Shown here piece by piece: positions 1-10,470 of a stretch of DNA of 64,000 nt. The stretch's first letter is position 1, and each line of letters opens with the position of its first letter. The stretch covers positions 1 to 64,000 of IMG/VR virus record IMGVR_UViG_3300023184_000025; one strand, written 5' to 3'. Made by a program: the position numbers and the translations under genes. Under the pieces are notes generated by a model. The model did no database searches. It saw nothing but the letters and a program-made list of their open reading frames with translations, and was not told where the DNA came from.

Positions 1-706
1 CATTGAATGGTAATTTATGTAGATACACATATTCACCTTTTCTAATCTTGCCACTGAACAAAACCATTTGTGGATCATTGGGGAACATACCTGTATCTGA
101 CCCAGCAGTAGTTAGACCCATTGCTATGGCAACTTTAGGATCAGAGGTAGCATAGATAGCATTTTGATTACTACCAGCCGCACCACCTGTATCTACCGAT
201 TGTCTTGGCTCTAGCATAGGAATCTTTTGTCTTGACCCATGCCAAAGATAGGTATTAATAACTTTGCCTTCCGCCACACCTTGCTGTATGGTGCTTAGTC
301 TAGCAAGTTCTTGTTCACCTTCGGGAGTCAGTAACCAATAGCCGTCGGCATCTACAATCCAACCAGCGTCATATAAACTGTCATACACTCTACTTTGGGC
401 ACGGCTTAGACTCTGACTATCTTCTTGAAATCCCAAACCATGATCATTTGCAACTTCAATGGCTTTAAGTAACAAGGCTTTGCCATAACCTTTGCCGCGT
501 ACATCGTCAGTTACTTCTGCCTGATTGTGTACGTCTTCAGTCTCAGGATCCCTATAGAATGAAAAATGTCCAACATTTTTTCCATCAGCGATTGCAGTAA
601 CAGTAAAACTACTTTGATAGTTGTCTGTGGATGCTGTGCGGAATTGTACTGCCGATGCGTCTGCTTCGCCAAGGAAGCCTTCAGTGATAAACTCTTGTGC
701 TCTCAT
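1..706 (-). CDS. Partial polyprotein (runs off the window edge): capsid-targeting-like leader + GNAT acetyltransferase domain + ADP-ribosyltransferase-like domain
   Basis: Not in the ORF track; translated by hand from the ATG at 706. MRAQEFITE|G...; GNAT acetyl-CoA motif VRGKGYGKALL; linker QQGVAE|G; then YLWHGS...LEPR...AIYATSDPKVAIAMG (H-G-S and Y-x-T/S pattern of Arr/ART-like folds). No stop codon down to base 2. Confidence 0.75.
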   Translation of the reverse strand, partial: MRAQEFITEGFLGEADASAVQFRTASTDNYQSSFTVTAIADGKNVGHFSFYRDPETEDVHNQAEVTDDVRGKGYGKALLLKAIEVANDHGLGFQEDSQSLSRAQSRVYDSLYDAGWIVDADGYWLLTPEGEQELARLSTIQQGVAEGKVINTYLWHGSRQKIPMLEPRQSVDTGGAAGSNQNAIYATSDPKVAIAMGLTTAGSDTGMFPNDPQMVLFSGKIRKGEYVYLHKLPFN

Positions 707-6619: not shown

Positions 6620-7354
6620 TTATGCTTTTATTAAGGTTACAGTTTTTCTGACTGTGCTTGGACTCACAAGACTAAGCATACTTACAAAAGATTCGTGATC
6701 GTATTCTACAAAAAAGTTTCCATACAAATAACAGTACTCGTCTTTTTTTACCCAATGTGTAAGTGCAGGCCCTAATCTTATTTGCCCTTCGTAGTTTTTT
6801 AAGAAATTAACCAAATAACTTTTTTGTTGTTTGGTTATTTTTCTATCTTTAAAATATAAACGATAAGAATGCTTTGGATTTTTTAATCTAATGGTACCTT
6901 TTGCAAACGCTACATTAATCTGATATACGTGTACATTTTTTATAAACGGTAATTTGGATAATTCTTCTATATATTTTTTATTGTTGGTGTATAGATATCC
7001 ATAGCCGCCTGACTGTATTATTAGTCTTTTGGTATCCGATTCTAACGTATAAAAATTATAGAACGACAATAAATTTTCTTCTACTTCATCACCAATGGGC
7101 AATCCCTCTGATCGGCTGTGCCAGTTTCCTCCCCAATTAACGTGTCTTAGGTGATCTTTGAATTTTTTTCGTTGAGACAAGTTCCAAGAAATCATCTTAC
7201 GATCTTTATCAGGATCATTTTTTAAATTTCTTAGACAAGGTAATTCTTGAAGATAGAAAACAGCCCTATACTCAAATTGATCAAAGTATAGCTGGCTTGA
7301 ATTAACTACTTCAAACTCTGGGTTTGAATTGATCAAGGATAATGTATCCATCAC
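6620..7354 (-). CDS. Hypothetical protein
   Basis: 244-aa ORF downstream of clpA. Confidence 0.6.
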   Translation of the reverse strand: MMDTLSLINSNPEFEVVNSSQLYFDQFEYRAVFYLQELPCLRNLKNDPDKDRKMISWNLSQRKKFKDHLRHVNWGGNWHSRSEGLPIGDEVEENLLSFYNFYTLESDTKRLIIQSGGYGYLYTNNKKYIEELSKLPFIKNVHVYQINVAFAKGTIRLKNPKHSYRLYFKDRKITKQQKSYLVNFLKNYEGQIRLGPALTHWVKKDEYCYLYGNFFVEYDHESFVSMLSLVSPSTVRKTVTLIKA

Positions 7355-9602
7355 TATTAACTGTAGGTTGAGTTGTTTCTTGCACAGGCACGTTTATGTT
7401 TGTTTCAAAGTAAATTTCTCCATCCTTTACAACAACATTTATATTGCAATCAGCAAGACGGTCAAATAAAATTTTTCTACTTAACGGAACACGAATCAGC
7501 TCGTCAATTTTTCTACCCAATGGTCGAGCTCCCATTAATGGATCATATCCACGGTCAGCCAATAGTTCAACTGCTGGCTCTGTTAAAGTTAGTTTAATAT
7601 TTTTATTAACCAAACTAGTTTTTAGTTCATCGACAAATTTGATAACAATTTTCTTAATTGCTAGTTTATCAAGCTTGCCAAATTTACAGACTGCATCCAA
7701 GCGATTTCGTAATTCAGGTTTAAAAAACTCTTTAAAGGCACGATCATCTTCGCCAGTTTTTGCCATGTCTCCAAAGCCAATGTTATTACGTTCACTGTCA
7801 GCACTACCAAGATTACTGGTCATAATAACAATGGTATTTTTACAATCAACTGTTTTTCCGTTGCTACCTGTAATTTTTCCTTCATCAAGCAATTGTAGAA
7901 AGATGTTACTTACATCAGGGTGCGCTTTTTCTACTTCGTCAAATAATAATATCGAAAATGGGTGCTTGCTCAAGTCGCTAATTAATTTGCCACCACCAAG
8001 ATTGCCATCCTCAAACCCAACATAGCCTGGCGGTGCACCAATCAAACTTGATACAGTATGCTTTTCCTGATACTCACTCATGTCGTACTTGAGTAATGTC
8101 ATATCAAGGTATTCAGCCAACATACGTGCCAATTCAGTTTTACCTGTACCAGTTGGCCCCAAGAACAAGAAACTAGACATTGGTTTTCTTGTTGTATTAA
8201 TGCCAGCAAAACTTACATAGATACGATCTAGTACTGTGTCAATGACCTGGTCTTGACCGTATACTCGTTGTTTGATATTACTTTCAAGATCAATAATACG
8301 TGTGCTCTGTTGATTGGCCAAGTGATCCATTGGTACACCGGCAACACGACTGACCTGTTGCATAATTAACTCTTTTGTGACTGTTAATGTACCTGCATCC
8401 TTGACCCTTTCACGAGCACAGGCAGCATCAATTAAATCAATGCTTTTGTCGGGATTCTTTTTGTCATGAATGTAACGACCACTTAGTTCAACTGCTGATA
8501 TAATAGCATCTGTGTCAATCATCACATTGTGAAACTTTTCCAGTCGCGGACTGAGTCCAATAAGAATTTTTTCTGTAGTTTCTTTGTTTGGTTCGTCGAT
8601 ACTGAGTCGATAGAATCTACGCATCAACGCACGATCTTTTTCAAAGCTTTCGTAGTACTCTTCCCAGGTTGTGCTGGCCACAACTTTAAGTACACCTTTG
8701 GTAATTGCTGGCTTGATCATATTAGCAAAATCAAGCTGGCTTTGTCCTGAACTGCCTGCTCCACGCATGGTGTGTGCTTCGTCAATAAACAGCACACAAT
8801 TCTTTTTACTTTCTAATGCATCAATTACCTGTTTGAGTTTTTCTTCAAACTCGCCGCGATACTTTGATCCAGCTAGTAAACTTCCGATTTCCAAACTCCA
8901 CACTTCATGATCTCTAAGGAAACTAGGAACATCATTGTTGACAATTCGCTGTGCCAGGCCTTCAATGATGGCAGTTTTGCCCACACCCGGATCTCCTACC
9001 ATTAGCACGTTGGCTTTAAATCTACGTGCTAACACAGTGACCATTTCTTCAATGTCTTTTTCTCTGCCAATCACTGGTTCAAGTTGATCTTTTTTTGCCT
9101 GATCGGTAATGTTGGTACAATGTTCTTCAAGTATCTCTGTGGCCTGTTGATTGGTGATTTTAACATCGCCGTGTTTGTAATTCTGTTCCCAAAATTTTAC
9201 AAACTCTGCTTTTGTTACACCATATTTGAGCAAGAAGTAATGTGCATGACTATTGTTTTCACTCATAAGAGCAAGATAAAGATCAATGGTGGTAATTACT
9301 CGTCGACCGGTGAACAATACTTGTGTCAGCGCACGATTAAAAATACGTTCTAGTGCATTTGTTTTTCGAGGTTGTATATCTTCTTTACTACTGCGTAAGT
9401 TTGTCAAACTTTCTAGATACGCATTAAGTTCTGACTCAAGCATGTCTATTTCTAAACCAAAATTAATTAATACAGTTCTAAATGGATTGTATTGTAGCAA
9501 CGACAGTAGCAAATGCTCAGTTAACACATACTCGTGTTTTTTGTCTCGAGCAATTCTAACTGCCGCATCAATAATTTGTTCAATTTCGGGATTATTTTGC
9601 AT
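7311..9602 (-). CDS. clpA: ClpA-like Hsp100 AAA+ unfoldase
   Basis: Clp N-domain (EHLLL), two Walker A motifs (GDPGVGKT, GPTGTGKT), LFIDEAH, DMSEYQEKH, LIGAPPGYVG and a ClpP-docking IGF loop; no ClpB coiled-coil M-domain. Confidence 0.92.
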   Translation of the reverse strand: MQNNPEIEQIIDAAVRIARDKKHEYVLTEHLLLSLLQYNPFRTVLINFGLEIDMLESELNAYLESLTNLRSSKEDIQPRKTNALERIFNRALTQVLFTGRRVITTIDLYLALMSENNSHAHYFLLKYGVTKAEFVKFWEQNYKHGDVKITNQQATEILEEHCTNITDQAKKDQLEPVIGREKDIEEMVTVLARRFKANVLMVGDPGVGKTAIIEGLAQRIVNNDVPSFLRDHEVWSLEIGSLLAGSKYRGEFEEKLKQVIDALESKKNCVLFIDEAHTMRGAGSSGQSQLDFANMIKPAITKGVLKVVASTTWEEYYESFEKDRALMRRFYRLSIDEPNKETTEKILIGLSPRLEKFHNVMIDTDAIISAVELSGRYIHDKKNPDKSIDLIDAACARERVKDAGTLTVTKELIMQQVSRVAGVPMDHLANQQSTRIIDLESNIKQRVYGQDQVIDTVLDRIYVSFAGINTTRKPMSSFLFLGPTGTGKTELARMLAEYLDMTLLKYDMSEYQEKHTVSSLIGAPPGYVGFEDGNLGGGKLISDLSKHPFSILLFDEVEKAHPDVSNIFLQLLDEGKITGSNGKTVDCKNTIVIMTSNLGSADSERNNIGFGDMAKTGEDDRAFKEFFKPELRNRLDAVCKFGKLDKLAIKKIVIKFVDELKTSLVNKNIKLTLTEPAVELLADRGYDPLMGARPLGRKIDELIRVPLSRKILFDRLADCNINVVVKDGEIYFETNINVPVQETTQPTVNSDGYIILDQFKPRV

Positions 9603-9678: not shown

Positions 9679-10470
9679 TTATTTATTTGACTGATCTTTA
9701 AGGATATCTATTATTTCATCTGGAATATGGTCGGGCATGACTGCATTTAATTTAATCATGATATCTCCTGTTGTTCCATTGTTTGAACGCAGACCTAGTC
9801 CTCGTAATCTCAATGTGGTGTTTGGATTAGTCATCGGAGGAACAGTCACTGACATTTCTCTACCTCTAAGGTCTTGTACTACTGCGTCAGTACCGATAAT
9901 TAATTCCCAAAAAGATGCATTGTGTTTGGCATAAAGATCATTGCCTTGTCTTGACCAAATTGGGTGTGGATGGATTCTAAACTGCACAACAAGATCGGAG
10001 TTACCCGGTCCGATACCCGGATAACGTATGTTAGATCCGTCTTCAACGCCTTCGGGTATGTGTATTTCAATTGCTGACGTGCCTAAATTTGATGTCACTG
10101 CTACAGTTCTTGCGCCACCAGTGACTACGTCGTCGAGCTTGATCCATAATGTCATACGTTGAAACGACTGTCTCGGTTGATTAACATTCATCCTAGCGCC
10201 AAACATATTAAAAATAGCATCCATATCAAATGGGTCCTGGCCGGCACCCGGACCACTAGATCTAAAATTAAAATTAGTCTGTGGAGTATCGTATTGTGCT
10301 CGTTTTTCTGGATCACTTAGTGTTCTGTATGCTTCTTCTACTTCTTGAAACTTTTTTGTATCACCACCCTTATCTGGATGGTGCTGGCTGGCCAGCTTAC
10401 GATAAGCTTTTTTAATTTCATCAGCGGCAGCAGTTTTGGGCACACCTAATGTGGCATAGTGATCTGTCAT
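9679..10470 (-). CDS. DnaJ class B (CbpA-like) co-chaperone
   Basis: J-domain with HPD motif, G/F-rich region and DnaJ C-terminal domain; no zinc finger. Confidence 0.9.
   Translation of the reverse strand: MTDHYATLGVPKTAAADEIKKAYRKLASQHHPDKGGDTKKFQEVEEAYRTLSDPEKRAQYDTPQTNFNFRSSGPGAGQDPFDMDAIFNMFGARMNVNQPRQSFQRMTLWIKLDDVVTGGARTVAVTSNLGTSAIEIHIPEGVEDGSNIRYPGIGPGNSDLVVQFRIHPHPIWSRQGNDLYAKHNASFWELIIGTDAVVQDLRGREMSVTVPPMTNPNTTLRLRGLGLRSNNGTTGDIMIKLNAVMPDHIPDEIIDILKDQSNK

Follow-up and report, generated by a model that had tools for sequence, protein, structure and literature searches.

What is encoded by a reading frame that runs off the end of a metagenomic phage sequence, and is its product an ordinary enzyme of the infected cell or part of the cargo carried in the phage head? 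The question arises at the left edge of the window, by which is meant the whole stretch of 64,000 nucleotides that was analysed (G000:C1:137947-201946, from a virus record of 262,308 bp that is 76% complete by CheckV). An earlier note on this DNA had described the edge frame as the fusion of a GNAT acetyltransferase with a domain resembling the ADP-ribosyltransferases (ARTs), and had likened it to Alt, the packaged ART of phage T4. The reading that we favour, at a probability of roughly 0.55, is that the full-length protein, P0001, is a capsid-targeted polyvalent cargo polyprotein which would be cut after glutamate residues into three injected enzymes.

The full-length protein and its distribution

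The left edge of the window leaves the frame open at its C-terminal end and not at its start. Extension into the flanking DNA adds 217 further codons, such that the immediate stop which the earlier note had allowed for is not seen, and the whole ORF (L001:848-2206:-) encodes 452 amino acids. The sequence elements recognised in that note are confirmed in the translation, with VRGKGYGKALL at aa 69-79, QQGVAEG at aa 141-147, YLWHGS at aa 153-158 and AIYATSD at aa 183-189. Its description of the protein as a fusion holds in that the GNAT and the ART-like domains are both present, but P0001 has three modules, the third having a ParB/sulfiredoxin (Srx) fold. This third module, the second linker and the N-terminal leader do not figure in that note. 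From the N-terminus the order is leader, GNAT, linker QQGVAE/G, ART-fold module, linker KKQGVAE/G and ParB/sulfiredoxin-fold module, where the slash marks a putative cleavage point (Table 1).

Table 1. Coordinates of P0001, its parts and its two upstream neighbours (window positions unless stated otherwise).
Feature	Residues or size	Position	Strand	Remarks
Edge ORF	first 235 codons of P0001	1..706 (listed as 2..706)	minus	ATG at 706
Remainder of P0001 ORF		left of window, genome 137294-137946 = L001:848-1500	minus	
Leader MRAQEFITE	aa 1-9	680..706	minus	CTS-like putative capsid-targeting propeptide; predicted cleavage after E9
GNAT acetyltransferase module	aa 10-141	284..679	minus	Pfam PF00583 and acetyl-CoA motif
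Linker 1, QQGVAEGK	aa 141-148	263..286	minus	putative protease site VAE/G; 23-nt exact repeat with linker 2
ART-fold module	aa 148-295, N-terminal part aa 149-235	2..262 (N-terminal part)	minus	H156 codon 239-241, Y185 codon 152-154
Linker 2, KKQGVAEGK	aa 294-302	L001:1301-1324 = genome 137747-137770	minus	23 bases identical to linker 1
ParB/sulfiredoxin-fold module	aa 301-452 of P0001	left of window	minus	predicted model and GNHR motif
Upstream neighbour, leader MRAQDFIVE/G	222 aa	707..1375	minus	stop codon abuts P0001 start
Next neighbour, apparently multi-module	695 aa	1375..3462	minus	...IAE/A junction near C-terminus

In metagenome protein collections, P0001 is represented by one identical 452-aa protein and by more than 500 partial relatives, and the DNA of the locus is present in the runs of 12 studies, mainly of freshwater or lake metagenomes. 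Among 50,697 cultured-phage records, a tblastn search with P0001 gave 0 matches.

The GNAT and ParB/sulfiredoxin modules

That the N-terminal domain is a GNAT acetyltransferase, as had been proposed, is borne out by a match of P0001 aa 29-91 to PF00583 which lies above the curated cut-off (E 3.2e-6; 27.8 bits against 20.7). The acetyl-CoA pyrophosphate-binding motif, R/Q-x-x-G-x-G/A, can be read in the sequence as RGKGYG at aa 70-75, and the module also matches an IAA acetyltransferase of known structure (PDB 1y9k, E 0.0095).

The ParB/Srx module at the other end of the protein was modelled from 59 sequences with a pLDDT of 96, and Foldseek relates the model, with probabilities of up to 1.00, to sulfiredoxin, ParB N-domains, Noc, SbnI/SerK and Osa. 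The G-x-x-R nucleotide-binding motif takes the form GNHR at aa 411-414 (G111-N-H-R114 in the numbering of the module) and is invariant in the 59 sequences. Against PHROG, the module gives a weak match (E 0.0058).

The ART-fold module

The second module is, with high probability, an ART fold of the H-Y-E clade that falls in no curated family, as judged from a predicted structure. The AF2 model, built from 68 sequences (mean pLDDT 84, pTM 0.78), retrieves Arr first when compared with the PDB by Foldseek (probability 0.98, E 8e-3), followed by the A chains of cholera and pertussis toxins, Tpt1/KptA, Rhs ART toxins and RES. A VIA search, which is independent of Foldseek and covered 48,161 chains, places KptA at the top (Z 8.5, rmsd 2.4 over 80 residues). 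In this search, approximately 45 of the 50 best matches are chains of the ART superfamily, including Rhs TreX, pertussis S1, diphtheria toxin and its homologues, Arr, ParT, DarT, MbcT/RES and PARPs. Since the individual Z-scores are moderate, with 8.5 as the maximum and 5-7 for most matches, it is the almost exclusively ART composition of the match list which leads to the assignment. The expectation in the earlier note that the protein from aa 148 onward would adopt an ART fold is thus supported by both searches.

The histidine and the tyrosine picked out in that note are indeed the conserved ones, H156 being present in 68/68 and Y185 in 67/68 sequences of the 68-sequence alignment. Position 251 is E or Q in 66/68 (E in 50, Q in 16), and E251 of P0001 falls outside the window. 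Each of the three residues lies on a predicted strand, H156 on strand 1, Y185 on strand 2 and E251 on a later strand, in keeping with the H-Y-[EDQ] arrangement. The module has its fold in common with the H-Y-E ARTs (Arr, Tpt1/KptA, diphtheria toxin, PARPs and DarT) and with DUF6886. With the H-Y-E ARTs it also has in common the placing of the tyrosine on strand 2, with a helix next, and a later strand that opens with an E or Q and then an aromatic side chain. The hhWHGS motif on strand 1 is that of the PARPs. It differs from the H-Y-E ARTs in being without an accessory lobe and in falling below the cut-off of every curated family.

Membership of the Arr or Alt family, both of which the earlier note had named, is not upheld, there being no Pfam match and the triad being H-Y-E rather than R-S-E. 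Indeed, the isolated ART piece gave no Pfam match (aa 146-322, E up to 10) and no PHROG match, and phmmer and profile searches against PDB sequences returned nothing meaningful for either the ART or the ParB module. Several named families were considered and rejected. Arr (PF12120) gives no profile match at E up to 10, and the TM-score to the Arr-ms cluster is 0.48. In the two-lobe type represented by Tpt1/KptA, only the NAD lobe (chain residues 91-180) aligns with a module that is about 150 aa in length. To the T4 enzymes Alt, ModA and ModB, from whose R-S-E triad that of the module differs, no sequence similarity was found in the tblastn search of 50,697 phage records. ART-PolyVal (PF18760) gives no Pfam match, with a TM-score of 0.38 to its cluster.

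The nearest named structural clusters are DUF6886 and Arr-ms. P0001 is itself without a match to DUF6886 (PF21820), and 9/10 stand-alone distant homologues match this family below its cut-off, the best at 23.6 bits as against 27; a literature search for DUF6886 found no paper. A search of BFVD with the ART module retrieved uncharacterised viral proteins alone, and an exhaustive HMMER search retrieved 153 relatives. At one extreme these are 99%-identical modules within longer or shorter chains (80-1622 aa), and at the other they are stand-alone proteins, 140-190 aa in length, with an identity of 30-45%. The overall picture is of a DUF6886-like ART-fold family with an H-Y-[EQ] triad, whose members occur widely among phages, giant viruses and bacteria.

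The leader and the head protease

The capsid-targeting sequence (CTS) of phage T4 is MKTYQEFIAE, in which residues 4 and 7 (F7) govern targeting and residues 8 and 10 (I8, E10) govern processing by the prohead protease gp21. Proteases of the gp21 family all cleave after Glu in a short x-X-E motif. The internal proteins of the T-even phages have this leader alone in common, are injected, and constitute a diverse anti-restriction arsenal; T4 Alt is an ADP-ribosyltransferase that is packaged and trimmed by gp21, and head-packaged ARTs are regarded as common among the myoviruses.

P0001 begins with a peptide which follows the CTS pattern, having an [I/L]-x-E end and the targeting Phe, with the core QEFIxE in common with T4. 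A start of the form M-R-A-x-[ED]-F is present in 96 of 247 retrieved proteins, for which the logo is M-R-A-x-E-F-[IL]-x-E, with F6 in 96/96, E9 in 79/96 and either I or L at position 7. Beyond position 9 the 96 leader-bearing proteins diverge. The codons of the leader vary synonymously in ordinary fashion while the peptide is kept, which suggests that selection acts on the peptide rather than on the DNA. In the genome as a whole, starts of the form M[RK]xx[ED][FILV] are found in 13 ORFs, 6/13 of them within a cluster at 134-139 kb.

The phage itself is a jumbo myophage from fresh water that belongs to the T4 superfamily, though its kinship to T4 is distant; the baseplate wedge shares ~35% identity with the wedges of the jumbo phages GAP32, fHe-Yen9-04 and CBB. 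Peptidase_S77 (the protease) and Gp23 (the capsid protein) are absent from the window's own, 76% complete, record, which counts against packaged cargo. A sister record of 345 kb, G002, which is 99% complete and matches it at 100% identity over 6 kb either side of the P0001 gene, encodes both a gp21-type Peptidase_S77 and Gp23, and the two genes are likewise found in two other relatives. It is on the strength of the identical sister assembly that the protease and capsid genes are assigned to this phage. In the relative G001, the capsid propeptide contains ALLE, VILE and MLAE sites, which fits an aliphatic-x-Glu specificity. With regard to the assemblies, contig ends of G002 fall inside the P0001 gene, with identity extending to genome position 137898 and resuming at 137947, such that 48 nt within the ART module are unassembled in G002 and its first base is the first base of the window.

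The idea that P0001 is a packaged enzyme in the manner of T4 Alt is strengthened by the CTS-like leader and by the gp21-type protease in the same phage, although kinship with the Alt family forms no part of it. The likeness to T4 IPI-III and Alt extends over several features: a short N-terminal leader with a QEFIxE core is followed by unrelated cargo, proteins that are otherwise unrelated have the leader in common, a gp21-type protease and a gp23-type capsid occur in the same phage, an ART is found among the cargo (Alt in the case of T4), and the locus is hypervariable. There are also differences. The cargo domains are here chained in one ORF by the internal junction QGVAE/G, the ART is of the H-Y-E type and bears no sequence relation to Alt, and the P3 residue of the linkers is Val, as against Ile in the T4 CTS, which counts against packaged cargo. 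Unlike Alt, for which packaging and trimming are established, P0001 is a case in which we infer loading by the leader, cutting by the protease and injection, from the likeness to the CTS, the gp21-type protease of the phage and the propeptide sites.

Linkers and joints

The linker peptides conform to the logo [KQE]-Q-G-V-A-E-G, and varied forms of them (GVTE, GISE, GLAE, GVVE and NVAE) keep the Glu and an aliphatic residue two positions earlier. Indeed, [ILV]-x-E stands just before the start of a module in nearly all contexts. Leader and linker are equivalent as junctions, each preceding the identical first residue of a module: stand-alone ParB-like proteins begin MRAQEFIVE-GKLSVDVPNE where the fused copy has KKQGVAE-GKLSVDVPNE, and the ART module start GKVINTYLWHGS comes after GVAE or after MRAQEFVTE. 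Some proteins have the leader immediately followed by the linker, giving MRAxEFIxE-GVAE-G.

The linker DNA, CAAGGTGTGGCGGAAGGCAAA, is the same in both linkers of P0001, and is fixed in rare codons across 41 related loci. In the 52 non-identical ORFs from these loci that were used for codon counts, Gln is encoded by CAA in 52/52 (background share 75%), Gly by GGT in 52/52 (46%), Val by GTG in 42/52 (16%) and Ala by GCG in 48/51 (6%). The word GGTGTGGCGGA occurs in 4 copies in the 262-kb genome, all of them at 132-138 kb, on the coding strand and in frame as G-V-A-E. Peptide cleavage alone does not account for this rare-codon conservation, which therefore counts against packaged cargo; the fixation could be due to homogenisation by recombination, to a recombination signal or to a translational pause.

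Contigs from four lake metagenomes, belonging to four studies, were placed on the locus. Of the loose contig ends listed, 17/24 are no more than 5 nt away from either the two linkers or two leaders, elements which together make up about 3% of the mapped stretch. Such a concentration of contig ends means that the joints are break-points of natural variants. Two back-joints (1322->833 and 1784->833 in L001) read in frame, as MRAQEF-T-QGVAEGK and then the ParB or the ART module. Two skip joints (1324->1766 and 1326->1764) were not taken as proof of an ART-deletion variant, since their short side, at 20-23 letters, is no longer than the linker repeat itself. Across the ART module and its two linkers (L001:1241-1860), contig depth in run X4 sums to ~5-fold that of the flanking modules, and in run X11 depth is greatest in the two linker-containing bins; this pattern fits an ART module and linkers which are common to several phage genomes in one lake.

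Exchange of modules among relatives

BLAST mapping reveals that relatives each match one module of P0001, at 80-100% identity, and that the module lies elsewhere in a different architecture or position. Among the 164 proteins with the ART module, 159 are without the GNAT and ParB modules, 3 combine ART with ParB, 1 combines ART with GNAT, and 1, which is P0001 itself, has all three. The pairing of GNAT and ART, which the earlier note had taken to suggest two activities delivered together, accordingly finds no support as a conserved functional unit, the architecture of P0001 being present in 1/164 and the great majority of ART proteins (159/164) being without GNAT or ParB modules; joint delivery as such is something that we too would propose. 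Among the partner modules are other GNATs, ParB_N, nucleotidyltransferases and a cytidylyltransferase-like domain, along with many unknowns; on single-linkage clustering, most partner segments fall in one cluster and many are singletons.

On this sequence evidence, the modules recombine freely, and related phages exchange them at the leader and linker joints. A partial precedent is found in the PeSLs of T4-type genomes, which are described as short conserved cassettes at module boundaries that accompany the insertion, deletion or replacement of variable genes in related phages (PMC2839356, PMC4122927). The likeness is that conserved short cassettes at boundaries accompany module exchange here too, and the difference is that PeSLs are intergenic promoter-terminator motifs which move whole genes, whereas the present joints are in frame and move domains (PMC2839356, PMC4122927).

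Gene neighbourhood

The P0001 gene lies in a tight co-directional array with overlaps of 0-4 nt, whose members carry identical or similar leaders and GVAE-type junctions. The flanks of the array are DNA polymerase and ClpP, and replication and chaperone genes surround it, with no adjacent head genes, which counts against packaged cargo. For the 222-aa protein encoded immediately upstream, no family was found. The 695-aa protein that follows has a weak match to Pol-beta nucleotidyltransferase (NTase) at aa 58-109 (PF01909, E 0.0059, below the cut-off), as well as an HExxH motif that was recognised by eye (AHELTH), and its C-terminal part resembles the N-terminus of P0048. These sequence features are reminiscent of two domains known from polyvalent proteins, the NTase and the MPTase.

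Array genes at genome 131427-136168 (L054, L055 and L057) also have GVAE- or GVSE-type junctions, with KKGVAEA and PQGVSEA in a 552-aa protein, and with NGVAEA and a Pfam GP88 domain in a 456-aa protein. Small ORFs in the same interval begin MRLREITES, MRYKEIKP and MRFNELQE, and the whole looks, by its sequences, like an island of leader-bearing cargo genes. A possible second, small group lies to the right of the window at genome 249993-255924, where leader-like ORF starts read MRLDEIEQG, MKLQELDAR and MQIHELTKL.

Elsewhere in the phage there are a full ClpP (genome 128645-129238, Pfam E 5e-81), a Clp/Hsp100-type ATPase and a DnaJ-like protein (window 7311-9602 and 9679-10470) and a GroEL-like protein (genome 96867-98486), the last three of these having been recognised by eye from N-terminal sequence only. 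Many ORFs in the genome have CxxxCxxC-type starts, and one ORF, at genome 20559-34841, is of 4,760 aa. Of the T4 late-promoter word TATAAATA, the whole genome, G000, contains 10 copies where base composition would predict ~30, and none of them falls between 125 and 150 kb, around the P0001 gene, which again counts against packaged cargo.

How P0001 may act, and the alternatives

Under the favoured reading, the leader would act as does the T4 CTS and carry the whole P0001 chain into the core of the prohead, where a gp21-type prohead protease would cleave after Glu at the [I/V]-x-E of the leader and of both linkers. Three separate enzymes would then remain in the head and enter the host with the DNA. 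Once there, they might modify components of the host or of its defences by acetyl transfer, by NAD-dependent ADP-ribosylation and by a ParB/Srx-type NTP-dependent or nuclease activity. The leader and the linkers would double as joints for the swapping of modules between related phages.

P0001 might instead be an ordinary cytoplasmic multidomain enzyme, made after infection and neither packaged nor cleaved, in which the leader and linkers persist only as short homology tracts through which paralogous cassettes recombine, and as flexible spacers. The attraction of such a view lies in the DNA, in that the nucleotide conservation of the linkers far exceeds any need of the peptide (see the GCG, GTG and GGT counts above), the two linkers have 23 identical bases, the joints coincide with contig break-points, and the gene is outside any head-gene cluster. 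We nevertheless consider it unlikely, since the leader peptide is kept despite synonymous variation, indicating selection on the peptide, and since the P1 Glu and the P3 aliphatic residue are the best kept positions even in GVTE, GISE, GLAE and GVVE. Moreover, it would have to be a coincidence that the leader agrees so closely with the T4 CTS at the residues that matter for function, and does so in a phage with a gp21-type protease. The same DNA evidence can be taken in another direction, in which the linker DNA CAAGGTGTGGCGGAAGG is a functional nucleic-acid signal, be it a shufflon-like recombinase site, a Chi-like stimulator or a Shine-Dalgarno-like or rare-codon pause, and the peptide is secondary. 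The extreme fixation in rare codons would be explained in this way, as would the confinement of all four GGTGTGGCGGA copies to 132-138 kb, on the coding strand and in frame, and the linker contains AGGTG, which we take to be akin to the Shine-Dalgarno core. Set against these points, every copy is in the one reading frame that gives G-V-A-E, no recombinase was found beside the cluster, no inverted copies were seen, and variant linkers retain the peptide pattern, all of which make a primary role for the nucleic acid improbable.

A further set of alternatives bears on the substrate of the ART module and not on its fold. Rather than ADP-ribosylating proteins, the module could have as its target the ends or bases of nucleic acids, as do Tpt1/KptA and DarT, or a small molecule, as does Arr, or it could hydrolyse NAD+ and thereby blunt NAD-dependent defence. 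It is consistent with this that the NAD-binding lobe of KptA comes out as the closest structure, that Arr tops the Foldseek results, that Q replaces E at the third position in about a quarter of the family (16/68), and that the ART domain is a minimal one of ~150 aa with no recognisable target-binding extension. The module is, however, without the N-terminal RNA-binding lobe of Tpt1, and the Arr, DarT and Tpt1 families give no sequence match at E up to 10. A target other than protein is a real prospect, yet one to which we give somewhat less than even odds.

Comparison with polyvalent proteins

The chaining of effector domains is a known property of the polyvalent proteins of phages and conjugative elements, for which delivery with the DNA and processing into units have been predicted (Iyer et al. 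2017, PMC5512222). The domains most often met in polyvalent proteins include GNAT, ART and ParB-like ones, and one GNAT family typically adjoins an ART (PMC5512222). P0001 resembles these proteins in having at least two unrelated effector domains in one polypeptide and in the variability of its architectures, and differs from them in being much smaller and in having an ART that is not ART-PolyVal (PMC5512222). Searches of Pfam and PHROGs found no MuF, portal or MPTase domain in P0001. Where the polyvalent proteins have an in-built metallopeptidase, processing would here fall to the prohead protease, at defined linkers (PMC5512222).

The occurrence of chained GNAT, ART and ParB domains in phage-delivered polyvalent proteins is already published (PMC5512222). 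What differs here is an uncharacterised ART family, the small size of a protein without MuF, MPTase or portal anchor, and a leader-linker grammar with nucleotide-fixed, in-frame joints. This grammar, as it appears from the sequences, would tie the polyvalent architecture to capsid targeting and processing of the T4 type.

Implications for jumbo phages

In its general form, the proposal is that, in one clade of jumbo phages from fresh water, the injected arsenal follows a grammar of two parts, namely a CTS-like leader and a nucleotide-fixed linker that is both protease site and recombination joint, such that cassettes are swapped and fused in any order and number, one leader loads them all, and separate enzymes are released. 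This generalisation is put forward tentatively, and is rather more doubtful to us than the favoured reading of P0001 itself. If true, it would amount to a domain-level shuffling system for packaged effectors, in which T4-style capsid targeting reaches polyproteins and domain shuffling is inherent in the coding sequence. If the roles proposed for leader and linkers are right, the two would provide a simple sequence rule for the injected first-strike proteins of a large group of uncultured jumbo phages, and modules that follow MRAxEF[IL]xE or QGVAE/G would be candidate effectors or anti-defence enzymes, of which hundreds, uncharacterised in function, are already visible. The leader-plus-linker design could also be reused so that a single ORF supplies several foreign proteins for packaging in T4-type capsids.
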